A stretch of DNA of 64,000 nucleotides from Hypanus sabinus (taxonomy: Eukaryota), in contig NC_082726.1 of the NCBI RefSeq assembly GCF_030144855.1, forward strand, positions 38,502,001 through 38,566,000. The letters run 5' to 3'. A program made the translations under genes and the position numbers. Shown in pieces: positions 26,401 to 52,004 of this stretch (position 1 is its first letter; each line of letters begins with the position of its first letter). Below the pieces are notes generated by a model. The model did not search any database, was not told the origin of the DNA, and was given only the letters and a program-made list of their open reading frames with translations.

Positions 26401-27838
26401 AGGCACATTGATGAAAGGAAAATGGAGGGCTATGTGGGAAGGAAGAGTTAGATTGATCATGGAGTGGTTTAAAAGTCAGCACAACATTGTGGGCTGAAGA
26501 CCTTGTACTGTGTATTACATTTATGTATTACATGTATATTACGGCATAACAGTAAAAGTTGAATGTAATGGTTGGACTTGCTCTGCTCCTGGCCCTTTGC
26601 CATCAGTACATTGTCATCAACAGACCATCTTTTTCACCTAGTATCTCATAGTAAGCAGTACTGTTTCTGACTTATTGTTAGACCTGATCCAGTCGTTTTT
26701 CACGCTATTATAGGATCTTAGCATCTATCAATATTTCTCATTCAATGACAGTACCACTCAACCGTTATCTTTTAACTCTCACCAGTGCAAGTCTCAAGCT
26801 ACCTCTCACACACTGCTACTATCTCTCAGTCACTGGTGATATTTTCTCACATTACCACAATCTCAGTTTTTGATGTTTCTCAGCCTGAATTTGTAATTCA
26901 TCAGTTGAAAATATTCGCACTCAGCCATTTATCTCATCAACCGATAATACCTCTCAATTGATGCTGCGAACTCTACACTTGTTACTGGTTCTCATATAGT
27001 GCCTTCAGCTCAGGCAATGCATGTATTCTGCATTCACCACTAGAATCTCTGTGCTTTTTTACTGTTAAAAACTTTGTCACTGATTGCATTTCTCATCAGC
27101 GTCACTGTGTCAACTGTTACTAGTATTTGTCACCTAGTGCTACGATCTCTCATCAATAAATGTTTCTTCTCACACAGTCAGTAGCTCAGCCAATGTCAGT
27201 ATATCTCACCCAATACCAGCATCCCCACAAAGGCAGATTTTCTCACCCAATATTAGAATCTCAAAAGTTAGCAATGTCTCTCACCCAGTGCCAGCACCTG
27301 CACTAAATGACAGTATTTCCAATAGGGCTAGAGATTTTCACTTAATAATGATAGTGTCAAATCCAGTGCAACTGTTCCATTCCCTTGTCAGCAACCCCAT
27401 CAGCACCAATGTTTCTCACTGGCTGCTAGTACCCAGTGCCAGCATGTCCACCACTGCCTGTGTTCAGATTCATGTACCATATGTGCATTGAAACACACAG
27501 TGAAATGTGCCATTTGTATTAACAACCGACACTCCTAGGGTTGTACTGGGGGCACCCCCACAAGTGTCACCACACATTCTGGCATCAACACAGCAAGCCC
27601 ACAATGCCGGGCAGAACAACACGGGACACAACAAAACACAACAGTGTTCCTTGTCTAGTGCCAGTGATTCTCACCCACTGCCAGCATCTCCACCAGTGTC
27701 CGCTTTTCTTTACTCACTGCCAGTGTTCCTTGCCCAGTGCCAATATCTCAACTAGCGGCAGTGGCTCTTACAGGGACAAGGGCTTTGCCCAAAACTAGTG
27801 AGTCCCCTGATCGCGCGGCCGCCTCCCCTTCCCACAGA

Positions 27839-27871
<33 letters not shown>

Positions 27872-28375
27872 CCTACCGCCCCTGTACAAGGGAACTGCTC
27901 ACCGCCCCCCCCCCCCCCCCACACACACACACACACACACACAACCAGCGGCCGCTGCGCGAGCCCAGCCCGGGGGTGGGGGGGTTGACGCGCGCGCGTT
28001 CAGGGCTTTTGCGCCCAGTCGAGGAGTTCTGGAGCCGAGCGGTGGCAAGGAGGTGTGGGGGGGGGGGGGGCACACCCAAACCAACTCTCTTTGCCTGCTG
28101 CTACGCTCGCCTGAACATCTCCGCTGCTAAACACGAAGCACAAAGCCTTGTTTGCATCTCGCACCTCGGGAGGGCGGAGAGATATATAACAAATAAAAGC
28201 AAAACCAACGCCGCTCCACTTACTTATCCAAGACAAAGTACAGATCGAAAGCTCCGTGACAGGACGGTTTGTCATCGGCTTTGTCCTCCGGGCCAGGAGT
28301 CGAGGAGCAGCGGGCGCTCAGAAGCAGCAGCGCGCTCAGCGCCGCTCTGCAGACGCCGCTTGCACACCTCGCCAT
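1562..28375 (-). CDS. ANTXR1: Anthrax toxin receptor (ANTXR1-like; by synteny the ANTXRL orthologue), spliced, partial. Exons 28375-28224, 6426-6355, 6269-6198, 4937-4856, 4739-4706, 2785-2706, 2616-2548, 1882-1802, 1622-1562; the gene continues beyond the window start
   Basis: Nine exons join in frame with GT-AG boundaries (152,72,72,82,34,80,69,81,61 nt). They give a signal peptide plus vWA domain: [17 protein letters not shown]...[12 protein letters not shown]...[10 protein letters not shown]...[12 protein letters not shown]...[20 protein letters not shown]...[20 protein letters not shown], which closely follows ANTXR1. Paralogue assignment is uncertain. Confidence 0.93.
1802..1882 (-). 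CDS. ANTXR1: ANTXR1-like exon 8
   Basis: [27 protein letters not shown]; 81 nt. Confidence 0.93.
2548..2616 (-). CDS. ANTXR1: ANTXR1-like exon 7
   Basis: [23 protein letters not shown]; 69 nt. Confidence 0.93.
2706..2785 (-). CDS. ANTXR1: ANTXR1-like exon 6
   Basis: [26 protein letters not shown] (MIDAS Asp); 80 nt. Confidence 0.93.
4613..4692. mobile_element. 80-bp hAT/Charlie-like MITE
   Basis: TIRs CAGGGGTTCCCAAC / TTTGGGAAGCCCTG, internal inverted CCACGGACC/GGTCCGTGG, imperfect 8-bp TSD acctaatg/ggctaatg. Confidence 0.75.
4706..4739 (-). CDS. ANTXR1: ANTXR1-like exon 5
   Basis: [11 protein letters not shown](G); 34 nt; ttttacag acceptor, GTAAG donor. Confidence 0.9.
4856..4937 (-). 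CDS. ANTXR1: ANTXR1-like exon 4
   Basis: [27 protein letters not shown] (MIDAS Thr); 82 nt, AG/GT flanks. Confidence 0.92.
6198..6269 (-). CDS. ANTXR1: ANTXR1-like exon 3
   Basis: [23 protein letters not shown](R); ctttcag acceptor, GTAAGT donor; 72 nt. Confidence 0.93.
   Translation of the reverse strand, partial: SPAADVFYCFLFSKQNFDEADRR
6355..6426 (-). CDS. ANTXR1: ANTXR1-like exon 2
   Basis: tttttcag|A TCA GGA AGT...; (K)[23 protein letters not shown](S); donor AG|GTATT; 72 nt. Confidence 0.93.
6720..7345 (-). mobile_element. Degenerate LINE (CR1/L2-like) RT C-terminal fragment
   Basis: Minus-strand remnants resembling ..[14 protein letters not shown]; heavily decayed, approximate bounds. 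Confidence 0.45.
8205..8295 (-). mobile_element. Penelope-like 3' terminal fragment with degenerate hammerhead motif
   Basis: Minus strand CAGTC-CTGATGA-AGGGTCTCAGCCC-AAAACATC followed by the family tail tgctgcctgacctgc. Confidence 0.65.
8525..9350 (-). mobile_element. Penelope-like retroelement 3' fragment (GIY-YIG endonuclease remnant + pyrimidine-rich 3' region + tail)
   Basis: Minus strand reads ...[39 protein letters not shown], then PVANHFNS in a shifted frame (GIY-YIG pattern); tail ...ctgctgagttcctctagcattttgtgtgtgtt. Confidence 0.8.
9583..9752 (-). mobile_element. CR1 3' end fragment
   Basis: Minus-strand [24 protein letters not shown], the typical CR1 ORF2 C-terminus. Confidence 0.75.
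11785..12990 (+). mobile_element. Decayed CR1 RT fragment interrupted by an ~870-bp insertion (11841-~12705)
   Basis: [10 protein letters not shown] at ~11811-11840; the CR1 frame resumes near 12720 (IDKWELMDV...VPQ...FINYLDE). The insert begins with attcaaagattcaaag and ends gccatcttc, like a reversed non-LTR-derived repeat. Confidence 0.55.
13070..14100 (-). mobile_element. CR1 LINE 3' fragment (RT C-terminus + 3' UTR)
   Basis: Minus strand [16 protein letters not shown] and LLPGLE-like motifs, with a CR1-type tail (gaacaatacagcacaatacaggc). Confidence 0.85.
14386..14414. repeat. (TA)n microsatellite
   Basis: tatatata run at the left end of the Tc1. Confidence 0.95.
14415..16448 (+). mobile_element. 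Tc1/mariner (IR/DR type) transposon with disrupted transposase; outer left TIR missing
   Basis: Transposase from ATG 14712 ([29 protein letters not shown]), [33 protein letters not shown] and DLNP motifs, with stops and frameshifts. 14417-14472 is the reverse complement of 16301-16356. The right end reads ggggtttgaatactttttataggcac. Confidence 0.9.
15721..16276. mobile_element. Solo LTR nested in the right arm of the Tc1
   Basis: Starts TGTAAC, ends ATTATA (degenerate TTACA); tttg duplicated on both sides; the Tc1 sequence resumes seamlessly after it. Confidence 0.65.
17195..17865 (+). mobile_element. Decayed CR1 RT fragment
   Basis: [39 protein letters not shown] and QMEFN remnants. Confidence 0.8.
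17866..20460 (+). mobile_element. Rex1/Babar-clade LINE, degenerate (APE endonuclease + RT)
   Basis: [81 protein letters not shown]; many frameshifts. Confidence 0.88.
20490..20875 (-). mobile_element. Tc1 transposase 3' fragment (same family as 14415-16448)
   Basis: [48 protein letters not shown]; internal DR aagtattcacccc. Confidence 0.88.
23390..23532 (+). mobile_element. Penelope-like tail with inverted junction
   Basis: cccttcgtcagg|acgtagggcctcggcccaaaacgtcgac...agatgccgcctggcctgctgtgttccaccagcattttgtgtg. Confidence 0.65.
26100..26520 (+). mobile_element. CR1 3' end fragment
   Basis: [28 protein letters not shown] pattern and a CR1-type tail. Confidence 0.8.
26700..27760. repeat. Highly diverged ~20-bp minisatellite-like array (core tctcacccagtgccagca)
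   Basis: Recurrent tctcacccaataccagcatc, tctcacccagtgccagcacc, tctcacccactgccagcatc; interrupted by a SINE-like insert at ~27470-27645. Confidence 0.5.
27836..27942. repeat. Two (CA)n microsatellites flanking a poly-C run
   Basis: Seen directly. Confidence 0.95.
28224..28375 (-). CDS. ANTXR1: ANTXR1-like coding exon 1 (signal peptide + start of vWA)
   Basis: ATG in strong context (AGAATGG); [50 protein letters not shown](K); donor AA|GTAAGT. Confidence 0.92.
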
Positions 28376-28579
28376 TCTCAGCACATGAACTATTAACCCC
28401 CTCACCCCCCAAATATAGCCCCACTCAGACGTATGTACGACAGCAGCCGGAGCCTGGGGCTTTGCTATTGCTTTGGACAAAATTCCAACGAATGATTTTG
28501 CTTCTCCGCAAATTGGCGTTCGCGGAGCACGTCAGCCCGAGATTCCCCTGCGGTCAGACTGACGTTTGCTCAGCCCACT

Positions 28580-28850
28580 GCAGAGGCGCCAACTGCTCAC
28601 TGCAGCTTGGGTTCAACCCCGTCCCACGCATTACACTGGCAGCCAGTGCAGTCCAGCATTGGATTATCCTCTGTCCGCGTCCCTGCACCGTAGCCAGTGC
28701 ACTCTGGTCTGGGATCACTTCACGTCTTGCTCCCGGCACCGGCAATATTGCACTTCTGCCTGGGATCAGCCCGCATCTTGTTCCCTGCACTGCAGCCAGT
28801 GCACTCTTAACTGGGATCTCCCCCATCCCGATTTCTGAAGCCTGGGTCCA
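28580..28850. repeat. Diverged ~51-bp tandem repeat upstream of ANTXR-like exon 1
   Basis: Units like tccctgcactgcagccagtgcactcttaactgggatc at ~28680, ~28731 and ~28782. Confidence 0.6.
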
Positions 28851-31800
28851 ACCCGTTCCTTTTCATTGGTTTTTTATGTTTCTTTCTACTTACTGTGAAT
28901 GCCCGCAAGAAACGAATTTCAGGGTTCTATATGGTGGCATATGCAAATAAATCATATGCCATAATAAATTTATGATAATAAATTTACTTCGAACTTTTGA
29001 ACTTCGCCCTGACAATTAATGCACTCCCACTTGGTACCGATCCTGTCTCCTTCCTGCAATGACAAGTAGTTGCAATATGGCCTGCTAACAACGCCCGTTC
29101 AGTGTCCAGCCCTGGCAATCGGAGTATTGCAGACTTGGAGGGTCCCCAGCGCCCTCCATACACTGGCGACGTGGATTTCATTCTGGGATCACCCTCTTCC
29201 GCTCACTGCAACTTGCAGTATCGTCCCCTGCTATTGCTATTGATAATGCTTCTAATTCCAGTCCAGTGTATTGAACTGGTAGCCAGTGCACTGCCCATTG
29301 CAACTTGAGACCAGTCTGTACCGCTCTTTGGCACTGCCAACCAACTCACAGAGAGTGCTATGCTGGTTGTCAGTTCAATAAACTGAACTGGAATTAGAAT
29401 CATTGTCAATAGCAATTTTGAAAGAGATCATTGGAGCTGGAAAATGTGGCAGGATTGTGAAGAAGTGCACGAGAATTGTGTTGTTGGTCACAAAGAAAAC
29501 ACGACCACGATGGGCCGAATTACGTTATTTGCTGCCATGTGTTTTTACACATTCAACCCATAAAGTGCTTTTAATTAGCCTACGTGAGCAAACCTTAATG
29601 TAGTCTCATATCGCAATAAGTTTGTAACTGTTCAGTCTAATTTTATTATGTCCCAGCGTTCCCAAAGCTTCTCACTCTTACATCAATAACAGCATCCTTT
29701 AAAACGATTACACAAGTTACTCGACAAACTCAAATATTTTTAAATGATTATTTTATTTTACGAAATTATCATTATTTAATGTTCATGTTCATTAACTGAG
29801 TAAGGCGCTGAGTTTTTAAATTTAACACGTAAAGCTGGAGTTGCAGGGGTGTTACTGCGACATTCATGATTAATCATGAGTTCGGGTTTCTGACCTGAAA
29901 GTCGCAGGAGGTTTCCAAAAACACCATGCAATATATAATAATTAGTAAGAGGGCGCTTGAGAGATAAAGTGCAAACGATAGGAAATGTTATCGTGAAATA
30001 ATATTGTTATGTTCAATTACGTCCAATAAAAGTATTCTTTCATCAGACTGAACAATATAGGCATTGTGTTTCTGCGTCTTGTTGTTGAGAAATGTTTCTC
30101 CTGCTGCGACTCCTAAAGCTGAATGATAATTCATATTTATCCTCAAGTAAGTAGATCGTCTTTCAAAATGTTATCAGGTCAGCCCATTTCTAGGGCATCT
30201 TAAGATAACTTCTGCAAACGGACTTATTTATTTATATCCTCAAATTCATCAATGAAGTGTTACTTTTGAAACGTTTGTTACTGTTGGCATCAAAGTTGAA
30301 ACACCACAGATTTGTAGTGAAAAGGGTTAAAGAGTACACGCAGTTCCCGATATCCAATCAGTCTGTTGCCTCGATTTCCAGCTTAAACATGTAAATAAAC
30401 ATGTGGTAACGTAAATCACATTTTCGCATTTTCAGTCACAAGCAAATTTGTACATTGCTTGACATTATTAATACCTGGGAGTTTTGAACTTCTGAACGCA
30501 AAGTGCCCTGTCGTTTTAATTTAGCATATGCCGAGCAGGATGTACATTGGAATTACAAATAAACAGAGTTAATATTGTTATCTCGGTAACTGTCAGAATG
30601 GAGACAGAATATTAAAGTTGAAAATGCAGTGCGTATCTTCGTGTTCATGTATGAAAATGCTAAAATAGTACAGATGTAAACAGTTCCTGATGTAAACAAA
30701 CAAATCTTAGCAGAGATTTTGTTAAAGAACAACTGCGAAATGCTTACATAAAATCACACCGAAAGATTGAAAATGGGACCGTGAATTGAGAGACTTAAGT
30801 TAAATTGTAGCATTTTACTAAGCATCCCTCTTTTAAATCTAATTCACAGCTCCCAACGTATAATCATTGCATTGAAGTTCCGTTCTATAGAAGACTTGAA
30901 CTACTTCATTGTCAAATTATTCATTTTGGCTTTATTAATGGAGAACATTTCTCCACGATGCTGCTCTTAAATGTAAAAGCAGCTCTTAAAATTTGACTTT
31001 TTGTCATATAAGCAGGCATTCTTTCAGCGATGGGGTGCATCTTCATTCACGGCTACACAACTACCCGATGAACATTAATCAAAAGGGTTGGTTATTTCAG
31101 ATGTCAAGATGTTCATAGGAATTTTCTGTCAGGCGTTGACACGCCTTTATTTGGAACGACATCTTTCAAAAGTGATGTTGCTCTTTGAACTGTAGGCATA
31201 TTTGATTGTGACAAGATATTTGGCCATTATAGAAGCATTTTTACATAAGCAATTCGCAGATGACTTTTACATGGAACGAATTAGACAATTGACCAGGAGC
31301 AGTCTGTCACGCAATAGTGATTTCGCATATTTACCGATTAAATGCAACTTGTTTATCAAGCAACATTATATAACTAATTCTAGGACAGGAAGAATTAAGA
31401 ATACAGTGTTCGTAATGGACAGTTGCATCAAAAACCGTTTTTTAGAAATATATTTTAGAATGTTTTAACGAATGTTAGAAGTTACCTACAGAGCTTCGTT
31501 TAACCAACGATAAATAGCCCACCATCGCAATTTGTGTCCAGGTGAATTGGTAAGTATTCTATAGCACTTTAAATATCATTCCGAAGGGATGAAGCTGGGA
31601 ATTAATTATTGTATGAAATGTTTACAGGAAAAAGTCTTGTTTAGATTGATACGACTAATTCCCGGAAGACTCTGTACTTTTTGATAAAATTTTCTTATTC
31701 TTTTACACATACAATGGTTACAAATATAATCCCATTTCAGGAACTGCTTGAACAAGAATTATAGCAATTATTAGAACAACGAATAAAATATTTTTAAAAA

Positions 31801-33576
31801 TGCAACGTTTTCTCTCAAGCAAGTGGCGCATTTCGGATGTAATTATCTCGCTGCGTGGAATTGTAACTTGTGCAACGAAAGTTTTTTTTTAAATTCTCCT
31901 GAATCTAAAAGACTTCTGAGTGACAAGTAGCTGCGCCGTTTTATAATGAGCATTAACTGAATTAGTCTAGTGTTTTTTTATCTGGCAGAATTAGTCATAA
32001 ATAATGCAGTAACCCGCTGGTTTATAAATATTAGTACAGAAGTCCGTTCTTGTGAATCAACCCGCCGTCATCACTTGTCACGCTCTTGTTAAATATGCAC
32101 AACAGACTCCAAAGTGGTTTTCCTTTCTTAAAATGCATTTTGTAAAATTCACATCCATCAAAAAAACAGTGGTACAAATTAGTTACACTGACGTTTTCTT
32201 CCAGCAGAGTTATTAAATCTTGCGAACTTTCGTATTCAATAAGTTTTTTTTAAGATCTGCGACTGCTCTTTCATTGCTTAGTAGATTTAAGATCGGCTAG
32301 AACGGCGAACACAAAAATAAAGACATTAAGTTAGCGTTTGGAACGCATAATGTGTAAGCGAAGAAATTCGGAATTTGTCACTCTTCACAGAAACAAGATC
32401 ATTTCAGACTGCTTTTGCGCTGATACAGGAAAAGGCTTAAGCACGATTGTCTTCAAATAAGTCAAATATTATTGCTATTATTCTTAAGGAGTAATCGCTA
32501 TCATTGTTTAGAGCTTCATAAAATTCAATGTACTCTGTCTAAGATAACGGTTGGACATAAATATGTAATATTTAGCATTTGACCTTAAACCAGGTGGTTT
32601 AAATAACCCAAATAGATATTATCACTTCTAATCATTATAAACGGTATGCACCAGATTCCATGTGTTATAGAAAATATTTTAGAAGCTATTAAATATTTCT
32701 TTAATGCATTACAATTGTTGGTTTCCATGTTTTCATTAATAGGTTGCTCCATATAACCACCAATGAAAGTGCCAATTGAGAGTGCATGCAAGCGGAAGAG
32801 CCCAGGGATTGCTTGGCACGCTTCAGTGAACAAATGATCTTGCAAAGGAAAGTGTCTTTTACAGCGGGACAAACTGTCATTTCCACGCAGCGCTCGCCAG
32901 CGTCACTCTCACTTTCAGGAATCAATAGACATCACAGCGCCCAAAGAAGGTCCTACCTGAAGGAGAAATTGAAGAAATCGATTCCAAAGAGCCATCGACT
33001 GGCATTGGTAAATGCAAGCGGGGTTTGTGTTTGTCTGTAGGTGCCGACTGTCTGTGGGTATTTTATACGAGTATATGTTGTAGACTTGTGATAAATCTTC
33101 TTTCCGTTCTGGCCAACAGTCACGTTTTAAATACCGAGACTGGAATCTGAGAGCAATCTACATAATTTAACTATCGCAAATCAGGAAGGTGCTTTATTTG
33201 TAACCTTTTAGGTGCTAGCTTATCTGTTTAATCGAATACATTTAATAAATCAGAAACCGTTATGATCATGTGGAGCTTGATATGGTTAAATCGCGATTAT
33301 TCAGCCAGGATTAAGAACTGCGTTCATCTTGAATATAAATTCATTAAACGCTACTGCTAAGTCTATATTTTAAAATATATATTTTAAATTACTTAAAACA
33401 ATCCGAGCGGTAACAAGTAACAGTCTTTGACTACGCGCAAAGTGACGATTTTAAACATGATCGTTGCTGGTGATGGTGTATAAGAAAGGTCGGAACTAAC
33501 AGGCAGACAGATGGACAGACAATGGGGATCAGACTCAGTGAGCTGATATGCATCAAATGAACAATCCTCTGACTTT

Positions 33577-33706
33577 NNNNNNNNNNNNNNNNNNNNNNNN
33601 NNNNNNNNNNNNNNNNNNNNNNNNNNNNNNNNNNNNNNNNNNNNNNNNNNNNNNNNNNNNNNNNNNNNNNNNNNNNNNNNNNNNNNNNNNNNNNNNNNNN
33701 NNNNNN
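33577..33706. other. Assembly gap (130 N)
   Basis: Run of N, flanked on the right by a (GA)-rich tract. Confidence 0.99.
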
Positions 33707-35569
33707 AGGGAGAGAGAGCGAGGGGAGAGAGAAACGCATTCACCCACATCGCTTATACTTTTGTGAGCGTTTAGACCAGTCGATATGCCAGGTTCAATCA
33801 GATCACTATGAATAGGCACCAAACAGTGCGTCTGCAACATGGTTTAAATGTTGAAAGCAATCTAATAACGTAGCAACTTAGCAATAAGTTCTCCATCTCT
33901 AGAGTTGGCTGTGAAAAACGGCGGCCTCTATTCAGTGGGAAATATTTATATTGAGATTACTTCCAACAGTCTGAAGTACTCTCTGAAGTATACTAAAAAT
34001 AATTATGTTGATGTTGGCATCTTTGTGTCAAATTGATTTTGCACGCGTGTCACTTGGTATTGTGGAACAAAAGACAAGCTGCGGGGAAAGGCGAGGACTG
34101 AATGAACAGTAAAATACGGTATCATGCTTCCAAGTGTCACTTGACTCAGTAAGACCCGAGAAGTTTTTTTCACACTGTGCCGAGAGAGCAGAGGTGCGAA
34201 CCGGGTTGAATAGACCTGCTTTGTACTGTTGAGAGTCATCAGAAAAGCACGTTAATGCCACAGTCCGTTAGCTTCTAACCGAAGCGACAACCGAGAGAAC
34301 ACGGCAAATCCTGATAAAAACAATTAACCGCAAGGGATGAAATACTCTTTGTTTGATTTTATATTATATATAATGTATATTATATCTTTACTAATTTATG
34401 CCACTGGCCTTAATGAATGCCGTGGAAGTAGTCATCCAGCTCCATCTCTCAGTTCATTAGTTTTCGCATTTAATTTAGGTCTCGGCTCCATACAATGCTG
34501 ATGATAAAAACGCTCAATATAATAAAAGGTCGCTCAGAATTGTCACAAGTTATCAATATCGCTTCGGCTGATAAGCATAATAGCATCAATTGCGAAGAAG
34601 GTTAGGTAAAATCATATAGTCTCAATTACAGTAACAAGAATGAAAAATGATTGATAACTTTATTATGCTTGCACTGCGCCGGGTTGTCTCTTTTCGTGAG
34701 CAGTGTTTCAGGCACAATGTCAGAAGCACAAAGTATACTCAACAAACGCAATGGTTTTGTTTCACTGATTTACAAGATGATGAACATTCTTCCACGGTCA
34801 ATACATTTAATTTCAATTGTATTTAATGTTTATCATGTCAATATATATCACATATCGACGGCTCTTTCTCATAACTACTCCCAATTCATGAAATTAACAT
34901 TTTAAAATCTTAATCCGCACAATTAAGCATATGCAGTAGCGAACATATCATTTGTAGCTTTTATCTTTTTTAAAAATACTACAATTATGCTTTGATATAT
35001 CATAATTTTACCAAATAATTTAGACGAGTCGTTTTATTCTGTAGCCCAGAACTTGAACCTATTTCTTAAAAGCAGTTTGCACCAACGATTCACTTACGGT
35101 TAAATTTCTGCGGTAATGATTAGTGGAGATTAGGAAGGGAATAAATGAAGATGATTTGGTAAATGGGCTAACACAATAAGCATTATTGATAAACAAAATA
35201 GCATTTTATAAACAGATTTTTGGGAAATTCGGATTTAAGCTATCATAGCTTGAATAGTTGTATAAACTTGTTTTTTTTTAAATCAAGAATGAAATATGTA
35301 GCATCCTGATCTTTCGCGGGTTACAAGCTCGGTAATCGTCTGTTGTAAAATAGGAGTATATCGCTTAATAATACTTAAGGGCGCAATATTTCGAAAAGTT
35401 GCTGGTTCTAATTAATCGTTTCATGTGAATAAGTTGAAGATCGTATTTGTGCAAAGTAGATATTTCTTAACTTCCACCCATCTAAACGTCTCAAGTGACA
35501 GGTATAATCCCACATGCACCACGAAAGTAAAGAAATTAACCCGTTTTATCTTTATGTCACAGGTGAATT

Positions 35570-35785
35570 ATGGAACTTACCCCTTTCTCTAAGGGGCTAT
35601 GGACAGGTGACAATAAATTTCTGCATCATCACTTCACTGACATACTAACAAGTGTGCACATTACCCGGGAGATCCCCGAAGATGCTGTTTTCGGTCCCTG
35701 CATCCTCCAGAACAACTTTTACGACACAATCGCGTTCATTGCCTTGAAGTCTTCAGATCGGAGATGTGTACCCTATGTGTTCCGG
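35570..35785 (+). CDS. ZNF488: ZNF488 coding exon 1 (PR domain, N-half)
   Basis: Acceptor tcacag|GTGAATT ATG (exon starts 35563, implying an upstream non-coding exon); donor CGG|GTGAGT. Confidence 0.9.
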
Positions 35786-38700
35786 GTGAGTGCCCTCTAA
35801 TCCAATACGACACAAATCTTTAAAATTTCACATTGGGAGCTAATTGTCTATGACACTTGAAGGAACATCAAACCACAGCCCAACTATACGAACTAACTGT
35901 CTCGCCAAAGCTCAAGATTAAAAATCTACTTTTATAATTATTACAATATTGATAGGATCAAAACTTGGAAGAGATTTATGTAAAAGTCAAAATCATAGTG
36001 GTGGTCTCCAGTTGAAAATTGGATGTCATATCAGAATGAAGTGAAAGATATTTTGCATTAACTTGACACCTTTGTGAATTTAGATCATGGAAAATTGAAA
36101 ACGTATTTACAGAGTCTGACCTGAATTTTTCAGGAATTGATTAGAAGTTTTCTTCCGTGCAGGTGGATATAACTGCGTTGAATAGTTCCACGGATGGGTT
36201 GTCTTGGTTGCGGCTGGTACAAGCGGCGAACAACGCCAAGGAGCAGAACTTGGAGGCTTACCTGAAGAGCGGACAACTGTATTACCGCTCTACGCGGAGG
36301 ATTAGAAGGGACGAGGAGCTCTTCGTGTGGTACGACAACGAACTCTCCACGCTCCTCGGCTTCACTGATATCAAAACTCGTACTGGCTCAAACAGTGAGT
36401 AATCCGGACACCACGCAAAGCTTTAGGATGACGCCAGCCAAGATGAAAGAAAGAATAATGCATTTTACCGTCGTCAGTCTGAGTTCAGATGAAAACCAAA
36501 AGCGACTTTGTTCAAACTGATTTTCATAAATAGGGCCTCAAAATGAAAAAGCGAAATTAAATAACCCACAATCGTTAAAAAAGGCCTATAACTTGAAATG
36601 AGAAGTTTTTTAATGTATTATTTTTTTGAAAATACTCTCAAAACGGATTTTTAGAGCAACATAATGAAATTAAGTATCATAGATCCCAACTACATATGAT
36701 TGCTACAATAAATCAGGAGGAGATCTGGCAAATCTCACATCAGATTACAAGGCGAACTGACCAAACCAAAATCGAACAATTTAGCACCGATTGGCCACTG
36801 AAAATCACGCGAGAATGGATAAGCCACACTTTATAGAATTGGATACACTGATATTTGGGTTGAAAGGCATGGTTGGAGAGTTCAAAAGAAGTCTGCCTCA
36901 AAAGTAGATGCCACCTTGCTTACGTCATTGTTACACATGGCAATACATCACATTATTTTAAGGAGCTTTCTTTCGTATCATATTATCTAATACAACTTCT
37001 CGATTATAAATTTGTGTGTTAGGATAGCATTGTTAACGTGACGGTGCTGCCAGAAAAATGAGATAATCTTTGGAGGGCTTGGTGTTATATTTGATTACTT
37101 GTAATTGCCCCATTTTCTCCCATTTCGCGGAGGTCTTGCCGTTCCTAGATAGCTATCCTGTTAAAGTGCTACAGAAAATGCACCATAACTTTATTATCAA
37201 TTCGTGTCCACGTGCAAGGATTAGCAGGAAATATTTATCCCGTTTACCTTAGAGTTAACAATGCTTTTAAATTTCTTTATTTCTACCCCACTGTTTATTT
37301 TAATCGTTCTTTGACTTACATGTCAACAGCATAGAAATGAAGACCCAGAGTAATAACTGCTTGGATCTCAAATATAGCAACTTAACCCATATTGTGGCTA
37401 CCACCCGTTTTGACAGAATTGTCTGTTTTTGACAGAATTTCCTGTTTTTGACAGAGCAGCAAAAATCGAACAAAAATAGGAGAAAAGATCTCTTTTTTTT
37501 GCAAAATAGCATGAAGTATCTCATATTTTATTGAGCTGTAACCAAGACCATTGGATTTATTGATCTTTTCTAAGCCAAATGGGAGGGAGTTGGTGTCGCC
37601 TCTCCAGAGACGTGAAAACATGACTTCTCCCCGAGAATTTAGTGCTGTATGTATGACCACCTTTACAAAGTCATGGAATTATTTTGTAGGAGTTTGCTGT
37701 TCTTCCTGAAGGGCTAGTGATGTTTAATCATTAAGCAAAGCCACTAAAATGTATACGTATTCGCCGTTTTCCTTATCCGTGTTTGCGGGATTGTGCAGAT
37801 TGGCTGGGAATTGCCATATTAGAACGGTGGCTATACTTCAATATTAGACTTAAAACTTAAAGACTGTTCTTGGGGTCTGGAAAGTGAAATCTGCGTGCAA
37901 GGAATGGGACACGGCGGTCTCGCGGTTTACAGATCCAGCTGTCGGAAGATGTGGGTTCAATTCCCGCCGCAATATGTAAGGGGTTTTCCTCCTGACATTC
38001 TCCCTCTGACCGGGAGGGTTTCCACCAGGTGCTCCATTTCCCCCTACGTTCCAAAGACCCCCGATTAGTGGGCATGCGATGTTATCGCAGAAAACCTTGG
38101 CGACACCTGCACATCGGACTGTGTTGGTCGTTGGCGGAAATGATCATTTCGTTGTATCTTTTAATATACATGTGACAAATCTTAAAGAACAGATTTTATT
38201 TCATTCGGTAAATGAATATTTCTGCAGTGGCACATTGAGAATGAGATGTTAACTTGTTTCATTGTTTTCGGCAGCATTCAGATGCGCGGACTGCGGCCAG
38301 GAACTGAAGTATGAAAATCCATATCTGGCCCACGTTCGATTCTTTTGCGGAAAGAGGAAGGATTATCTCTGGCGAGATTTTCAGACCCTTGGCTTTGGTC
38401 ACAGTGGCCTTTTTAAAGACCCTTCCAAGAACGCTGAGCTCAAAGATAAGAGCAAGGTGACCAACTTTCATAGGATCGCCCATGACTTGGAACACTCTAA
38501 GAAGAAATCAATGGCACAGGTCGAGGAGCGACCGCCCTCCGAAAAACACCCCAACAAGCGGAAACTAGAAGGTGCAGAGGACAACAAAAGCAGGAAAACG
38601 GTCTTATTGGAGAAAACAAATAACCTGGTGTGCGTCCAGAACGGAATTTCTAAAGATGAGCCAAGTGTTTTCCCGACGCTTGCGGTTTCTGTTTGGAAAC

Positions 38701-39452
38701 TTAATTCTGATAAGTATTTGTTGAAGAAGGATTCATCGGAGCATAAAGCAAGTGCATTTACTGAGGTTCGAAGACAGCGCGAAAAAGCCAAAGCTGAAAA
38801 ATTAGACGGCAGTGCTAAAGATGAAACCCCTGACTTGACGAGGAAGGTGGGTGCAAGAGCAGAGGTGGGTCTCAGTTCCTCTGGCAGCGCCTTCTCTTCA
38901 GTTTTGCCTTCTGGTGTCAGAGCAGATGAGCAGAAGAGTGCATTCTGTCAGCCATGCAGACGAACGGGGGAAGGGACCCCTTTGCTTCTGAGCCATGCTA
39001 CTGCTGAGGTCGCCGGGGATTTATCTGATTCCACCGCTACGAGTCATCTCCTGGGTCCCACTAATCTGCTAAACTCTAAGTCTATCAACACTGATCTTGG
39101 CAATTCTCACATATTACACGCAAGTGTTGCAACCGGCAGCCCACTTTTATACCCCACTGACATGTGGCCAAAACCGGTTGGCGTTCAACTCCAATCCACG
39201 TCCACGCTGACACTGCTCCCCCCATCCTACACGTCCTTCGGGGTTTCTGCTCAGAACTGGTGCGCCAAATGCAACGCGTCCTTTCGAATGACTTCAGACC
39301 TGGTGTTTCACATGAGGTCTCACCACAAAAAAGAGTATGCAACCGACTACTTGAACAAGAGAAGGCGAGAGGAAAAGTTGACGTGCCCGATATGTAATGA
39401 GTTTTTTAGAGAGCGCCATCATCTATCCCGACACATGACATCTCACAATTGA
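35570..39452 (+). CDS. ZNF488: Zinc finger protein 488 / PRDM8 paralogue with PR/SET domain, ~541 aa; exons 35570-35785, 36163-36394, 38275-39452
   Basis: In-frame GT-AG splicing (216+232+1178 nt = 542 codons). N-terminal PRDM8-type PR domain (GLWTGD...FGPC...YDTIAFIALKS..PYVFRVD...WLRLVQAA...EQNLEAY...YYRSTRRIRRDEELFVWY), a CxxC..H..C finger, and two terminal C2H2 fingers (QNWCAKCNASFRMTSDLVFHMRSHH; CPICNEFFRERHHLSRHMTSH). DLVFHM and adjacency to RBP3 favour ZNF488 over PRDM8. Confidence 0.9.
36163..36394 (+). CDS. ZNF488: ZNF488 coding exon 2 (PR domain, C-half)
   Basis: ttccgtgcag|GTG GAT; VDITALNSSTDGLSWLRLVQ...EELFVWYDNEL; donor A|GTGAGT, phase 1. Confidence 0.9.
37930..38185 (+). mobile_element. 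tRNA-derived SINE (V-SINE-like) in ZNF488 intron
   Basis: B-box gggttcaattccc, core ggtttccaccaggtgctccatttcccc...ccaaagac, tail tacatgtgacaaat. Confidence 0.7.
38275..39452 (+). CDS. ZNF488: ZNF488 coding exon 3 (zinc fingers, stop)
   Basis: ttttcggcag|CA TTC AGA TGC; long ORF ending HMTSHN-TGA. Confidence 0.92.
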
Positions 39453-42400
39453 GTTGTGAATTCAAACTGAAGGGAGTGAATTTTAAAGGCTTCCCGACAG
39501 TATGACCAGAAGAAGCTAGGATGGAATTCCTTAAGAAACTGTTGTCACTTCAGATGAGAGTGAGTTCGTCTCACGGGCAATATTACAACAGGAAGGAGAA
39601 ACAGTCTTAAATATAAAAAAAACAATCTATTTAGGCAATAAGATATATTAGAGTTATGTAAAGGTACCAATGACATTAAAGGTTATACTTGTAGGATAAT
39701 CGTTTTGATCTGGCAATGAATTAACTGTGCACCCCATGGACCATTCATGATAACAAATTCCTGCTTTTGAATCTTTGTAAACTTAGAGTATCGACCATGG
39801 ATTCTGCGGTTGATACAACGACCTTCAACCTGTATAATTATTTCTGTTTGGATAATTAATTTTGCGGAAAATCTGTACCGGAATTCAATTAACTTATCAC
39901 AATGCATTTTTTGTCTCGAATTATAGTTTCATATCATGTAAGCGCAAGTTGGAGAGATTTAAAAAAATACTATTGCTACACCAAACTAACGTGTATCTAT
40001 TTAAAAAGATTCATGATTGCGTGCAAAGCATATATAGATGACTGTTTAGTCTTGAAAATAGTCTAATTCGTACACTACTCCACGACGGTGAATAAAACAA
40101 AATATTTGGGTAGCTAGTTAAAAGCGCTAGCAACAAACAACCTCTCGAATGTACTCCAAGGGTCCAGCAGCATCTGTGAGAGAAGGAACTTTTGACTTTT
40201 CGGGTGGAAACTCTGCATCAGGACGAAGTACTTCTGTACAGTAAAGGCTATGCTATCGATGTGTCTGAATTAAGATAAGCATTAGTGACAGGACCATCCG
40301 AAAGCCCGCCCATGCATTCATTAAAGGCAACTCTATATCTGTCAATCATACCAAAGGCGAGTGGAACAGCAAAACTACTGGCGTACCTCGGTGTTGTGAG
40401 CTTTTTTAATTTGCAGATTAAATTGGAGGATTTTTCAGGATATTTGCATATCTGAGTTGTTCAAGTATCAAGATAAAGAATGACAGTCTGAATATGGTTC
40501 ATTAGTTCTCGTTCTATATTTTCCAGATTTCAGTAATAAGGAGCTCCATATTAAACTGAGATCCCCCCCCCCCACCACCTTAGCACCGTATGAATGTTAA
40601 CTGTGTTGAATAAGTTACGGCTGTAAACGTTTTAGAAGAAGTATGTTGTCCCAGAATTTGAAATTATTTCTAGGTTTGAGGAGATTTCTTGTAATCTGCT
40701 GTTTAGTCATTCACAGATGATGCGGTTCTATTTTTTGTGTAGCTACATGAACCGCAATTCAAGGGACAATTATTGAGATTTCTATTTGAAAAATACAAAT
40801 TATAGCTTTATGTTCCCTTAGCTAGCATAAATGGAGAGAACTCACACCGCTGAACGTTGGAACATATGAAGCGGTCGATAGCTGTATACGAATTTGAGGC
40901 AGGGGTTGGCCACTCGTTCCTTCATTGTTCCTCCATTTAGAAAGGTAATTGCTGATTCGCTTGCATTCCAGTCTACTGGGGTAACCAGCAAACACAGCGT
41001 TAGAAGCGCTGGAAGGGCAGAATAGATCAGCTAGAAATGGTGAAAGGGGCTTCATACTCTGAGGGTTCGCAGCTTCAAATCGGCACCTTTGAATTCAAGA
41101 ATAATCGAAAAGTCTATACTGAAAAAAATTATATCAATTGTTACACCCAAGAGACAATTCAACGCTGGGTAACCAGACCGGAATTCATACTGGACCTATC
41201 AAAAGGTAATAAGCTACATTTATATAGAGCTTTTCACATCCCACGTCAATGCATTTAGGGGAGTTAGTAAGTGACAAAAAGACAAAACGGTGACGATGTC
41301 TAGTTACATACACAAAATGCTGGTGGAACTCAGTGTGTCGGGCAGCATCTAAGGAAGGGGGCAAACAGTCGACGTAATCGTAATGATCTGGTCAACTACT
41401 CATCACAAGTGATTGACGCTCACTCTGAAATTGTACTAACTACTTGAACTCTTTCCTCGTTGAAAGAAGCCATTCGCTTTATTGCGACGCTCTCTGGTAG
41501 CGAGCGAACTGCGATATTGTTCAGCAGTGAGATGCGAAATGATACAGGACGTCAGAAGGTGAGCGGGCGGTGGTCTGTTTCCGGATGCACAGCGTGCATT
41601 TAGTCGACAGAATTCAACAATAGCTTCGGCTTCCAAATCGATTTCTGCGCTATATTTTACATTATTAAGCTCACGGAGGTTTACTGTGGTTTGGGAAGAA
41701 GAAGGTGTCCGAGAATCGAACCCTCTTAAAACTGATTTAGATTGTAAGCGTTTTAGGGGCGGAGAATCAAACTCCGCCGGTTTAGTAGAGACTAACGCCT
41801 ATCCGGGGAAGTTGAGCAGAACAGGATTTAAGCAGAATGGTGACCCTTCGAGCTAAAGTATCCTGCTACCCGCCTGCGAGTGCTAGAAGTTATTCCCGCT
41901 AGCACGAAATACTGCACGGTGTTTAAGGTGGCGCCTTTTAGAACGGAAGTCAATATACGAGGTGTAAGAAGGATAAGGGAGAAGCATAAGAAACACGGTG
42001 GTTGGATTTGGGAGCACCTGTTCGGATGGATGCCAGGGGCAAGTATTTCACGGCATTTTAAAAGTATCTGGACGAGCAAGAGAGTCACAAGGGTCAGAAG
42101 GCTGCGAGCCCAATGATGGTGAATCGGATTAATGTACATGGTCAATGGCCGTGGGGGTGGGTGAATTGCCTGTTCTTCTGCTGTTTGTCTCTGCGAACCT
42201 ATAAAAATATTGCGAAATGATAGAAAATAGAAATCCGAACTGCTGAGCAGTCGCCGCGTCAGGCAAAACTTGAAACCAAAGATCACCGATTTGAAACGTG
42301 TATTGTTCCTTCTGTACAGTATTTGCTAAGAAGTCACTTAACACCCACCTTGAGAAAAGACCGGTGTGAATACTGTATTGCAAACTGATTGACGAATACT

Positions 42401-44485: not shown

Positions 44486-44811
44486 TTAGGTACGTCCGTG
44501 CAAATGGCTTCTCAGGATCTCCCTAGCCGTCTCCAGCGCTGTGGCAGAGGGTACATCGATGTGAGGTGCGACTCCGGCTCCTTCCCAGGAGGTTCCACCC
44601 GGACTGGACGACCTGACGGTCGGCATAGTCAGGTAGAGGTCGGTGTCGTCTACATGGTAGGTTTGTGGAGGGTGACATCCGCCACTCGTCAACTCGCCGA
44701 CGATGAGAGCTCTTCCCACTCTTTTCATCACGAAGGCGAATTGCTCCGCTGCTCCCGAAGTGACGTTGCTTGTAAGGACAATTAGCTCCCGTTTAGAACC
44801 ATATCGCTCCC
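44486..44811 (-). CDS. RBP3: RBP3 exon 4 (coding part)
   Basis: [63 protein letters not shown]...[11 protein letters not shown]...HLHGRT-TAA. Confidence 0.95.
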
Positions 44812-47800
44812 CTTGACAAAATGAATAACACCGTAATGAGGCGGGATTAAGACTGAGAACGAACAATGAAGCGGATGCTGTCTTCTATTCTTACCTGATG
44901 ACCAAGGAACAGTCCATATTTCGTAGGTTGTGTCATTAGGTCTATTGTAAACGGTATCCAGGAGCACCGGATTCCCATCGTCAAAGAAATAGGAGCACAG
45001 GGTTGGGATAGAAGAGGTGGGTCCTCCAATGTTGTTCCTAGGCCAAACATGTGTGTTTGCATTGTTAAGCTCGTAAACAACAACACATTCGTTAAGCTTG
45101 TAAACAAAAACACACTAGGGTGGGGGCAGAGGGGACACGAGCAAATTCGGCAAGAACCAGAATTAATTTAAACACATGTGAAGAACTAAGCTGTTACATA
45201 CCACCGCAGTATAGTTCTAGGAGACTTTGACATTCGTGTTGCTTAAATGTCAAGATCCATCCATTCACTCAATGAAGCATTAAAATCTACTACAAGGAAC
45301 ACGATGCCGAATGAGCTTAGCGGGTCAGGCAGCAACGATGGAGAGAAATGGACAGTCACCGTTTTGGGGCGAGAACTTTCATCTGGACTGTAGCCATCCA
45401 AATGTTGCCTGACCCGTTGATTTCCTCTGAAATCTTATTGTTCCTGCAGTCCATCTGAACATCAGTCCCAACTCTCCCATCTCCATCAACAGGCCATCAC
45501 ACTTCTGTCCTTACAGTGGTTTATTTTTAGCTGACTTTCAACAACAAGTGTTTTGTCGAGTACCTTTGCACTGTCCGCCATAAAAAAGACAGGAACTCCC
45601 CGTGGCTATCCATTTCAATTTGACTTTCTGTTCTATTCTGATATGTCTGTCCACGGCATAACTCAACCACAATGACGAGGCCAAACTCAGGCTGGAGGAG
45701 CAACACCTCATATTACGTTTGGGTAGCCTCCAACCTGAACATCGACTTCGCTAACTCCCGCTCATTTCTTCCCATTCCCCTCTCTTTTCTTTCATCATTC
45801 TGGTTCCTCTTCCCCACCCTCCCTCCATTTTCTCCCCCGCCTGATCGTCACCTTCCCTGGTTCCCCTCCATCTTTCCTTTCTTCCATGGTCTACTGATAT
45901 CTCCTATTAGCCCCCTTCTTCTTCAGCCCTTTACCGCTTCCATCTATCTTGCCTCACTTCTTACTTCAATTCCCCTTCTCCCACTCACATTCCCCTCAAC
46001 CACATGCTTCCCCCTCCCCGCACCTTCTTATTCTGGCTTCCTTTCTAGTGCTGATGAAGGTCTCGGCCCGAAACGTCGAATATTTATTCTTCTCCATAAA
46101 TGCTGCCCGACCCCGGAATTTCTCCAGTATTTTGTGGACGTTGAAGACCAGAACGCACTTGTTATCTTTCAAGAGCTACGACTACCTCAACCCCGCCTTC
46201 CCAATCTTTTATCCGATCAAGAATTAGAATTATTACGTTATTCTGTTGGATAGTTAGGAAAAAATTAGTTGGAGTTTGCATACTCGCTCTAATTCACTAT
46301 TAGTAGTAAATACGTATTCCCCCCCCCCCCCCAGTAAATAAGATGTAGCGCCTCAGTAGCGTACGGGGCATCGGAAGTAGGGAAGTAGGAGTTCAATCCC
46401 GGCGACCTCTGTAAAGCGTTTCTGTACGTGCTTTAGTGGAATGCGTGGGTTTCACCGGCTCACCCGGTTTCCTCCCACAGTGCAAGGACCTACCGGGTAG
46501 GTTAATTGGTCATTGTAAATTGTCCCGTGATTAGGTTAGGGTAAAATCGCAGATGTCGGGGTTGCTGGGCGGTGCATTTCGAAGGACCTATTGCGATCTG
46601 CGTCTCTTAAAAAAAACTTAAGCAGATGACCTGAACGACTAACTCAAAGATTCGGCCTGATTATACAGAATTGGCGATTATGACGTTTGTCAAAATTTGG
46701 ACTCACGGAAAATAGTAATATATGGCTTAAGGAAATTCATGGACTCCCAACCATCAGGATAATTCCTAAGCACTAAAAGTGAAATATGTGCGTTTGATCA
46801 CATAGTCTTGATCGGAAATGAAATGAAATCCCGGAGATCTATAACAAGCCTGATTCGTTATATTCAGTAACTGAGTTTGATAGGTCGGATTTTACACGCA
46901 GAATCAGGTTTCAGACCCCTCGTAGCCGTTTTTTAAAACGCTGCTAGTAAATAATGCAACAACTTGCCGTGTGGGGTACAAGTACATCAACAGTCATAGT
47001 CAGGAACTGTAGCTTTGTGGCAGACGGACAGTCTCGTTGTGAGTCTGTGATGGCACTGATGCAAGTCTGCCTCTGCCTCACTGATTTGCTGCTGTCCTAA
47101 ACTCAACAGCGCCCTCCATTGTCTTTAATCGATATTGCTACCTCCCACTTCCTACATTAGCCAACCATAAGGGAACGTGGATAAATTGCCAAGTAAATTC
47201 CAAACTATGCGTAGTTGACGTATTGTGCCTAATCTCTCGAAGAAGATGGTGACCGTTTCAAACCCATTTTATGCTGTTCAATCAAAGGCACCCAACAGAG
47301 AATGCTTTCATCAAAGATATCCTGAGAAAAAAAACATCAAAACCCTGGAATGCTTTGATTCACCTTGATGGGATATTGCAATAAATATTTATTATCTCAG
47401 TTTCTCAATTATTGAAGCTGAATATCAAGACGAATTAAAATTGTTATTTTAATTTAGAGCATGGATTTTTGTCAGTCGTTGTTGGAGTTTCCTGAATGAT
47501 AAGCAAACAAAAAGAACTTTCTACTGTACCTAGGCACACGTGACAGTAATAAATCAGACCCAATTCCAGTTCTGATATTTACGACCCAAGATGGCTTCCG
47601 TTCAATTCCGCCATGGACGATACCAAGACTGGCTGCGGAAGAAGGGTTGGGCATGGAGTTAGAAAAGCCATCACGTGAAAAACCCAGCGCTTCTGAAATG
47701 GCAAGAGAAGCTCCGAAGTCCTCAACCCTGGGAGAAGAAGAATCTTCGCCTAGAAGACTCCTGGGTCTGGCCCAGGATAGAGGACTCTAGCGAGCTTCTG

Positions 47801-50800: not shown

Positions 50801-51932
50801 CTTCGGAGATGGTCTGAAGCTCGTAATTAAGTTTTGCTGCCAGGTCTTGTTCTGACGTTACAGCCGAGCGAGCAATTTTAGCAACGTGAAGGGCCAGGGA
50901 AGGTACCTGATCTACAAAGCAATAGTGGGCGCCCAACAGCTCTGTGACTTTCCGGATTACATTGGGCATTTCTTTCCTTACGGCTAGAATGGAGGTGGCT
51001 TTCTCAAGGGCTCTGTCTGCATTTACCGGTACACAGGGGAACACACCGTTCACTTCCCAGCTCTGGCCGGTGATGGGGCTGACTGACCTGGCAAGGGGAA
51101 CAGTGATGAAGAAGTCAGATGAGCCAATGCGCAGCTTCTGAACGTTGAGAGAGCCGCCCGCTGTCCGCTCCCCCACCAAAAGGCCGCGGTCTAACTGCTT
51201 CAGGATGTACGCTACGTCCTCGGCTACCCCATTGGTGTTCTTGCTAATAAGCACCAGGACGTCTTTATCCTTGTCATATCTTTCACCCAGCAGAACGGGT
51301 AGGGTCCATATATCCTTCGTGGTATTGGACGGGCGGTCATATATAGAGTCGATATGTATGGCAGGGTTTGCATCGCAGAAGTAAGATATGATGTAAGGAA
51401 TACCGGAAACCTTTCCGCTGCTACTGTAGCGGAGATCCAGGATCATGGCGCTGGTGCTGACCATGGACTTCCAAACCGTGTTTACTAGAATCGGGCCAAC
51501 TACTTTGACGATGTCCTCCTCAATAATATGGTCAATTCTCAAGTAGCCAATGTTATTTTCCAAGATTTCGAACTTGATTGAATTTTGGACCAATGCCATG
51601 ACTATCTCGGGGCTTGGGGGAGGGAGGTTGACTGGTTCCGAGAGAGAGGTCCCGGGTTCGTACGTGACCAGTAATCGGGGGTCGCTCAAGGCCCCCTGGA
51701 CGCCAGAGGTCAACATTGCCGCAAGACTTTGCGGATCATTCTCACGCAATATGTCGCCACTCTGATTGACTTGCCTGATGGCCTCTTTCATCCCAACTAA
51801 ATTCTCTGGGAAGCAGTAGTTATCCAGCAGGATCTCAGCCATGTCCAGCATCAGCGTGGATTGAAATGTCTCGTCGGTGGGCACATACTGCAGTAAAAAA
51901 AGCGCCAGACAAATGAACGTCCTTGTCGTCAT
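44486..51932 (-). CDS. RBP3: Retinol-binding protein 3 (interphotoreceptor retinoid-binding protein, IRBP), four modules, ~1219 aa; exons 51932-48933, 48827-48637, 45037-44895, 44811-44486
   Basis: Signal peptide [18 protein letters not shown], then [26 protein letters not shown]. Four modules with the repeated GYLR(F/I)D, IDLRYN.GG, VGE.T.GG and W.G.GV.P motifs. Exons of 3000/191/143/326 nt splice in frame with GT-AG. Confidence 0.97.
44895..45037 (-). CDS. RBP3: RBP3 exon 3
   Basis: [47 protein letters not shown](G)|GTAAG; 143 nt. Confidence 0.95.
45295..46140 (+). mobile_element. Penelope-like fragments in RBP3 intron 2 (inverted tail, GIY-YIG C-terminus, 3' region, hammerhead motif)
   Basis: PVAIHFN..., [23 protein letters not shown]; CTGATGAAGGTCTCGGCCCGAAACGTC at 46051-46077. 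Confidence 0.8.
46345..46610 (+). mobile_element. tRNA-derived SINE (V-SINE-like)
   Basis: B-box ggagttcaatccc, core tgcgtgggtttc..ccggtttcctcccacag..aag, ttaattggtcattgtaaattgtccc. Confidence 0.75.
48637..48827 (-). CDS. RBP3: RBP3 exon 2
   Basis: cccccag|[34 protein letters not shown]...LIVDL(R)|GTAAT; 191 nt. Confidence 0.95.
48933..51932 (-). CDS. RBP3: RBP3 exon 1 (modules 1-3 and start of module 4)
   Basis: 3000-nt open frame from the ATG at 51932 to ...VVPMP|GTAGGA. Confidence 0.97.
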
Positions 51933-52004
51933 TTTCACAAAGCTCCAGTACACCGGGGGAACCGACCTGGAGCAACACCCTTCAATTTGGACTGAAATGA
52001 AAGC

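Follow-up and report, generated by a model that had tools for sequence, protein, structure and literature searches.

Mouse Zfp488 has been reported to cooperate with Olig2 as a zinc-finger repressor specific to oligodendrocytes (PMC3210692). PRDM8, in turn, cannot reach DNA alone and acts as a repressor recruited by Bhlhb5, an Olig-related basic helix-loop-helix (bHLH) protein (review PMC4620005), and it has been listed by Vervoort et al. among the PRDM proteins with reported histone methyltransferase (HMT) activity (PMC4760075). In zebrafish, a PR protein of 502 amino acids (aa) named 'prdm8' is present in progenitors of the motor neuron (pMN) domain and in oligodendrocyte precursor cells (OPCs), where it controls the OPC versus oligodendrocyte fate (bioRxiv 10.1101/2020.03.27.012294). 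A duplication of Prdm8 was detected in gnathostomes, with one of the copies concluded to have been lost in sarcopterygians (Vervoort et al. 2016, PMC4760075), and the zebrafish pair has been treated as PRDM8 co-orthologues (Sun et al., PMC2200798), in a survey that locates prdm8b to the retina, cerebellum and tegmentum. In the literature searched, no paper was found on an evolutionary link between ZNF488 and PRDM8, ZNF488/Zfp488 and PRDM8 occurring only as incidental co-mentions. In this work, we analyzed a stretch of 64,000 nucleotides (nt) from the stingray Hypanus sabinus (contig NC_082726.1, positions 38,502,001 to 38,566,000; hereafter the window, with coordinates counted from its first letter), focusing on a gene at 35570-39452 that an earlier note, made from the letters alone, had taken for a ZNF488 orthologue retaining a complete PRDM8-type PR/SET domain.

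Our results indicate, with a probability of about 0.88, that this stingray gene is an orthologue of ZNF488, i.e., a gnathostome paralogue of PRDM8, which displays the full ancestral PRDM8-type layout and encodes a probable Olig-tethered co-repressor with an accessory PR domain. Its identity was examined with a tree of 64 sequences (IQ-TREE, LG+C20), with the Prdm8 proteins of a mollusc and a spider as outgroup. The window gene was placed inside a ZNF488 clade with a support of 100/100, whose order matches the species tree and which also takes in the short proteins of seal, pocket-mouse, sloth, Anolis and frogs; PRDM8 and PRDM8b constituted a separate clade (82/86). Constraining the chondrichthyan ZNF488-type genes to group with PRDM8 resulted in a loss of 134 log-likelihood units, and this topology was rejected by the approximately unbiased (AU) test (p=2.5e-60). 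Regarding membership in the PRDM8 orthogroup, the gene was found outside the tetrapod PRDM8 clade, and its protein carries DLVFHM instead of DLVYHM. The site concerned, DLV[YF]HM, is occupied by F in 115/120 ZNF488-type proteins and by Y in every PRDM8-type protein (113/113), as well as in the lamprey, hagfish and octopus proteins. The analysis found no counter-evidence to the ZNF488 identity.

Some groups of related sequences deserve separate mention. The lamprey and hagfish proteins named PRDM8 (P0269, P0286, P0129) formed the sister group of the ZNF488 clade of gnathostomes (97/88), yet they carry residues that are PRDM8-like or ancestral (DLVYHM and L[KR]C), and this placement may reflect either an old duplication or an artefact. 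Teleosts harbor a third, fast-evolving gene, labelled 'prdm8a' or 'znf488-like', with the motif DLVQHM (Danio P0433, Esox P0435, Astyanax P0437), whose long branches make its position in the tree uncertain. Further, many proteins of 380-500 aa devoid of a PR domain, derived from transcriptome assemblies (e.g., P0192, P0198, P0201), display a C-terminal finger pair 65-75% identical, followed by a short tail.

The genomic neighbourhood agrees with the tree. FGF5 and ANTXR2, beside which the earlier note had placed PRDM8, were not among the genes searched for, and the sole neighbour identified in the window was RBP3, the known neighbour of ZNF488:

44486-51953, minus strand: RBP3 (IRBP), with an open reading frame (ORF) of 1009 aa at 48924-51953 (Peptidase_S41_N, 1.8e-107) and a further exon at 44486-44866.

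The 1009-aa first coding exon of RBP3 contains four Peptidase_S41_N/S41 repeats, and the gene lies directly downstream of ZNF488 on the opposite strand, so that both are convergent. The same convergent arrangement was found at the seal, Engystomops and Pelobates cultripes loci, and the two genes stand next to each other in the published orders of human 10q11.22 (ANTXRL, ANXA8, ZNF488, RBP3, GDF2, GDF10; PMC8624726) and of duck (GDF2, RBP3, ZNF488, ANTXRL; PMC8690979). Furthermore, when a search was seeded with lamprey PRDM8, the matches comprised, besides PRDM8 of tetrapods and prdm8b of teleosts, the PRDM8b proteins of Hypanus sabinus, two Mobula species, Narcine, Scyliorhinus, Heterodontus, Pristiophorus and Callorhinchus, which represent a second gene. 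The presence of PRDM8b proteins in rays, sharks and chimaera agrees with the separate PRDM8 for which the earlier note had asked as a check, the window gene not being the sole copy, and its assignment of the gene to ZNF488 rather than to PRDM8 stands on the 100/100 clade, the AU test, the RBP3 neighbour and this separate PRDM8b.

The coding sequence comprises three exons on the plus strand (35570-35785, 36163-36394 and 38275-39452), which together give 1626 nt and a protein of 541 aa with zero internal stops. Considering also an exon of the 5' untranslated region (5'UTR), delimited by contigs from the public runs X1, X3 and X5 described below, the stingray ZNF488 is expressed and comprises four exons or more, with the following features:

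32980-33008, plus strand: 3' end of the 5'UTR exon, given by the upstream-running contigs of X1, X3 and X5, with donor GTAAAT at 33009.
35563-35785, plus strand: coding exon 1, with acceptor CAG at 35560-62, ATG at 35570, 72 codons and donor GTGAGT; N-terminal half of the PR domain.
36163-36394, plus strand: coding exon 2, with acceptor CAG, donor GTGAGT and 77 codons plus 1 nt, ending in phase 1; C-terminal half of the PR domain.
38275-39452, plus strand: coding part of the last exon, with acceptor AG; first finger, low-complexity linker and terminal finger pair, stop at 39450-52.
35666-36357, plus strand: PR/SET domain, residues 33-137, split by a 377-nt intron (35786-36162); Pfam envelope taken from the 98%-identical Hemitrygon akajei protein.
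38283-38348, plus strand: atypical C-x2-C-x12-H-x4-C finger (zinc knuckle), residues 153-174, common to ZNF488 and PRDM8.
39261-39326, plus strand: C2H2 finger 2 with DLVFHM (39297-39314), the signature of the ZNF488 clade.
39384-39446, plus strand: C-terminal C2H2 finger 3 (Pfam zf-C2H2, zf-C2H2_4).

The best match in a search with exon 3 was the RefSeq "zinc finger protein 488" of Hemitrygon akajei, to which the spliced window protein is identical at 532/541 positions in a gap-free alignment (98%). As for the PR domain, exon 2 alone was matched by Pfam PRDM2_PR (PF21549; 9e-16, 58.2 bits against a cut-off of 27), and in a sequence search of the PDB it matched the PR domains of PRDM12, PRDM14 and PRDM9; exon 1 alone (72 aa) gave zero Pfam matches. 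In the full-length Hemitrygon akajei protein, the Pfam PR envelope covers residues 33-137 (2.4e-15) and spans both PR exons. AlphaFold, run on an alignment of 50 sequences, gave a model of residues 1-190 with a mean predicted local distance difference test (pLDDT) score of 76.6, and all of the top 29 PDB matches of this model in a fold search were PR domains. The PR identity between the ray ZNF488 and its chimaera, coelacanth, gar or bird counterparts is 65-82%, compared with 40-54% in the linker. Downstream of the PR domain, three finger motifs were recognized. The first finger, CADCGQELKYENPYLAHVRFFC (38283-38348), stands at the start of exon 3, and at least 90% of 50 ZNF488/PRDM8 sequences share its residues C153, C156, H169 and C174; zf-C2H2 and zf-C2H2_4 scored above the Pfam cut-off.

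Transcript evidence was obtained from four public runs compared with 35400-39600, in the form of contig sets from related organisms, 90-99% alike, that presumably represent RNA; the splice joints and the 5'UTR exon are documented by contigs from three runs (X1, X3, X5) of three organisms, and run X2 contributed zero contigs aligned to 35400-39600. The joint of exons 1 and 2 (35785|36163) was present in X1 and X3 contigs, with 35786-36162 skipped (GT..AG), and the joint of exons 2 and 3 (36394|38275) was found in frame in X1, with a synonymous CA to CG difference. Exons 1 and 2 were further matched end to end by X1 contig 2, covering 35562-35787, and by X1 contig 4, covering exactly 36162-36394. 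Contigs of X1, X3 and X5 extend 5' of 35562, and this extension matches the window solely at 32980-33006, which indicates a 5'UTR exon ending at 33008 and spliced to the acceptor at 35560-62; likewise, the 3644-nt X1 contig 7 runs from 38277 to beyond 39600, pointing to a long 3'UTR. The in-frame junction of exons 2 and 3 is also kept by all annotated relatives. These results agree with several claims of the earlier note, namely the uninterrupted PR domain over two coding exons (open frame, Pfam envelope 33-137, PR-type predicted fold), its splicing to exon 3 (36394|38275 in X1, with exons 1 and 2 joined in X1 and X3), and the PRDM8-type first finger with a terminal pair bearing DLVFHM, located here at 38283-38348, 39261-39326 and 39384-39446. 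The start at 35570 proved right for the ATG and wrong for the exon boundary, as the exon begins at 35563 and a further 5'UTR exon ends at 33008.

Compared with PRDM8 (PRDM8b of fishes), the ray ZNF488 displays an identical domain order, with an identity of 57-59% in the PR domain and of 83-84% in the C-terminal fingers, and the action as a bHLH-tethered repressor is likely common to both. Conversely, both belong to different clades, the ray gene is flanked by RBP3, PRDM8 carries DLVYHM and LKCPICNESF where the ray ZNF488 has DLVFHM and LTCPICNEFF, and the constraint on PRDM8 is stronger. With mammalian ZNF488/Zfp488 (~340 aa), the ray protein shares orthology by tree and RBP3 microsynteny, a linker alignable over ~330 residues, and the C-terminal finger pair with DLVFHM and LTCPIC.E[FY]F; it differs in being ~200 residues longer at the N-terminus, owing to the PR/SET domain and the C2HC knuckle, and the mammalian branches are far longer (stem 0.86). 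Finally, the non-mammalian ZNF488 proteins in RefSeq (Hemitrygon akajei, Danio rerio) have the same architecture and length, with PF21549 throughout, and the difference from the Hemitrygon akajei protein consists of nine amino-acid substitutions only, with zero structural ones. The gene is thus an ordinary one, its 98%-identical relative being already annotated in RefSeq as a PR-bearing ZNF488, and its apparent zebrafish orthologue has been functionally studied.

PR-bearing proteins of 500-550 aa (PF21549) were found in sharks, skates, chimaera, coelacanth, lungfish, bichir, sturgeon, gar, bowfin and teleosts and, among tetrapods, in caecilians, salamanders, turtles, crocodiles and many birds; they are labelled ZNF488 or, in older annotations, PRDM8 (Pristis, Leucoraja, Callorhinchus, many teleosts). 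Almost all vertebrates other than mammals thus retain the PR domain, as their annotations already show, and its presence is no relic of cartilaginous fishes. In the mammals sampled (seal, pocket-mouse and sloth; marsupials and monotremes were not included), the ZNF488 proteins are devoid of a PR domain, and in seal no relic of the PR exons or of the first finger was found within ~11 kb upstream of the coding exon, farther-upstream relics being possible. In Anolis carolinensis, a relic of the first finger stands behind a splice acceptor just 5' of the annotated start, with two in-frame stops (L002:9878-10030), and the upstream 10-11 kb yielded no relic of the PR exons, with the same possibility of more distant ones. 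For the frog Pelobates cultripes, the start Met of the annotated protein falls within a decayed PR exon 2, whose upstream half has stops (L004:9884-10114), and exon 1 was not found at the fetched locus; a weaker PR relic was observed in Engystomops. Mammals, Anolis and frogs also display the longest branches in the ZNF488 clade. As read from these sequences, the N-terminal erosion is independent in mammals, Anolis and frogs, with the C-terminal fingers always kept. The earlier note had described the PR exons as kept in an ancient lineage and lost on the mammalian line; both halves hold, the mammalian loss being reflected in the three proteins without the domain and in the relic-free upstream region of the seal, and what has to be amended is that retention extends beyond cartilaginous fishes and that losses also occurred in Anolis and frogs.

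Other explanations for the locus were considered. Several close relatives are named PRDM8 and the architecture is identical to that of PRDM8, so the gene might be PRDM8 itself, misread as ZNF488 through the older names of fish orthologues; we give this next to no weight, as the two form separate clades and the joint grouping is rejected at p=2.5e-60, RBP3 is the neighbour as it is for ZNF488 in seal, in frogs and in the gene orders published for human and duck, the window protein has DLVFHM rather than DLVYHM, and Narcine, Callorhinchus and Scyliorhinus torazame possess PRDM8b in addition, a gene that clusters with the PRDM8 of tetrapods. A PRDM8 identity is thus refuted by the tree, the AU test and the separate PRDM8b. 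Scarcely less improbable is a reading in which the PR exons have become a relic, or are part of another transcript, and the functional product is a short, mammalian-like ZNF488 translated from exon 3 only. Exon 3 alone is indeed a long ORF, short forms are known in mammals, Anolis and frogs, and one X3 contig has an out-of-frame joint of exons 2 and 3; however, both PR exons are open and bounded by canonical GT..AG sites with matching phases, contigs join exons 1 and 2 (X1, X3) and exons 2 and 3 in frame (X1), the domain is conserved at 65-82% across gnathostomes with a complete predicted fold, and the ray exon 3 has zero Met 5' of the first finger.

A further alternative concerns the activity of the domain, since the PR domain might be an active histone lysine methyltransferase and the ray protein a true chromatin-modifying enzyme, which would give the 'second PRDM8' of the earlier note an enzymatic meaning. 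The domain is intact and conserved, and HMT activity has been reported for PRDM8 (PMC4760075). In an alignment with PRDM9, the ray ZNF488 retains the tyrosines in QLYYRS and LFVWYD, and it reads VQAA where PRDM9 has VNCA and PRDM8 has VQSA. In PRDM9, these tyrosines presumably line the lysine channel, and VNCA is presumably the counterpart of the SET NH-motif, so that the former would speak for catalysis and the replacement of the latter against it. The domain has also been lost at least three times with the gene retained and, to our knowledge, the PR domain of ZNF488 has not been assayed in any species. An enzymatic role would be unlikely, though clearly less so than the two readings discussed above, and both the potential chromatin modifier and the tie to the origin of myelin proposed in the earlier note are conjectural.

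Turning to the ZNF488 reading and its function, most likely, by analogy with its relatives, the ray ZNF488 would be an Olig-tethered co-repressor of the neural and oligodendrocyte lineage. The protein would be nuclear, would be brought to DNA by bHLH factors of the Olig family, and would be active in ventral neural progenitors and in the oligodendrocyte lineage. The C-terminal fingers and the linker would constitute its indispensable part, with the PR domain as an accessory repression or interaction module. As this domain has been repeatedly eroded and the C-terminal fingers always kept, it is more probably a protein-interaction or repression module than an indispensable enzyme. In addition, the 502-aa Danio protein P0442, whose RefSeq name is now ZNF488, bears the ZNF488 signature and shares 85% identity with a cyprinid ZNF488-type protein (P0114); judging from the common length and this signature, the 502-aa zebrafish 'prdm8' appears to be a ZNF488 orthologue.

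Several points weigh against this overall interpretation. The proposed function is carried over wholly from orthologues and, among these, the zebrafish 'prdm8' was equated with P0442 by length, signature and the 85% identity, P0442 not being one of the 64 sequences of the tree. The ZNF488 PR domain (65-82% identity) is under weaker constraint than that of PRDM8 (86-91%); at the same time, its conservation over more than 400 million years argues for some function, and the term 'dispensable' fits some tetrapod lineages only. PRDM8b is documented through proteins of rays rather than through a locus in this genome. With regard to the transcripts, X1 contigs also cover introns, as pre-mRNA or DNA would, and the RNA nature of the runs is presumed. 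Lastly, the low-depth X3 contig 9 joins 36394 to 38271, 4 nt 5' of the expected acceptor, and its ..CG end is non-canonical; with the letters of the window, this joint causes a frameshift with a stop at residue 164, giving a PR-only product. A minor isoform, a difference between species or an artefact could each account for it.

Other features were noted along the window. A run of N at ~33580-33730 lies within the intron separating the 5'UTR exon from coding exon 1. A G+C-rich stretch (0.45-0.48) at ~27800-29000, which lies ~4 kb 5' of the 5'UTR exon and has ORFs derived from TG/CA microsatellites, may be a candidate CpG-island-like promoter region. Farther upstream on the plus strand, a Tc1/mariner-like transposase fragment (14983-15300) and a run of reverse-transcriptase-like ORFs (17989-20056) were recognized by eye; Pfam searches with two ORFs from these regions returned nothing at E<=0.01, and both elements are presumably decayed.

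Beyond the identity of the stingray gene, we tentatively propose a broader scenario, which we hold as possible and judge to fall slightly short of even odds: ZNF488 would be the second gnathostome Prdm8 paralogue, inferred by Vervoort et al. to be lost in sarcopterygians but surviving in all of them, with its PR domain eroded at least three times (mammals, anoles and frogs) and its C-terminal fingers nearly unchanged, and its ancestor in jawed vertebrates would have had a PR domain, as an accessory module, and would have partnered Olig2 in the progenitor domain of motor neurons and oligodendrocytes. A surviving second Prdm8 paralogue with repeated PR erosion would not amount to a discovery but to a modest clarification. 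It would correct the published sarcopterygian loss and tidy the nomenclature, fish 'prdm8' being ZNF488 and fish 'prdm8b' being PRDM8. If true, the phenotypes of zebrafish 'prdm8' would be ZNF488 biology, connecting two literatures that, within the literature searched, do not cite each other, namely that of zebrafish prdm8 in pMN/OPC fate and that of mammalian Zfp488 with Olig2. Likewise, the loss of the PR domain would coincide with an accelerated evolution of the remaining protein, and the repeated N-terminal erosion would constitute a natural experiment on the need for a PR domain in a PRDM factor.

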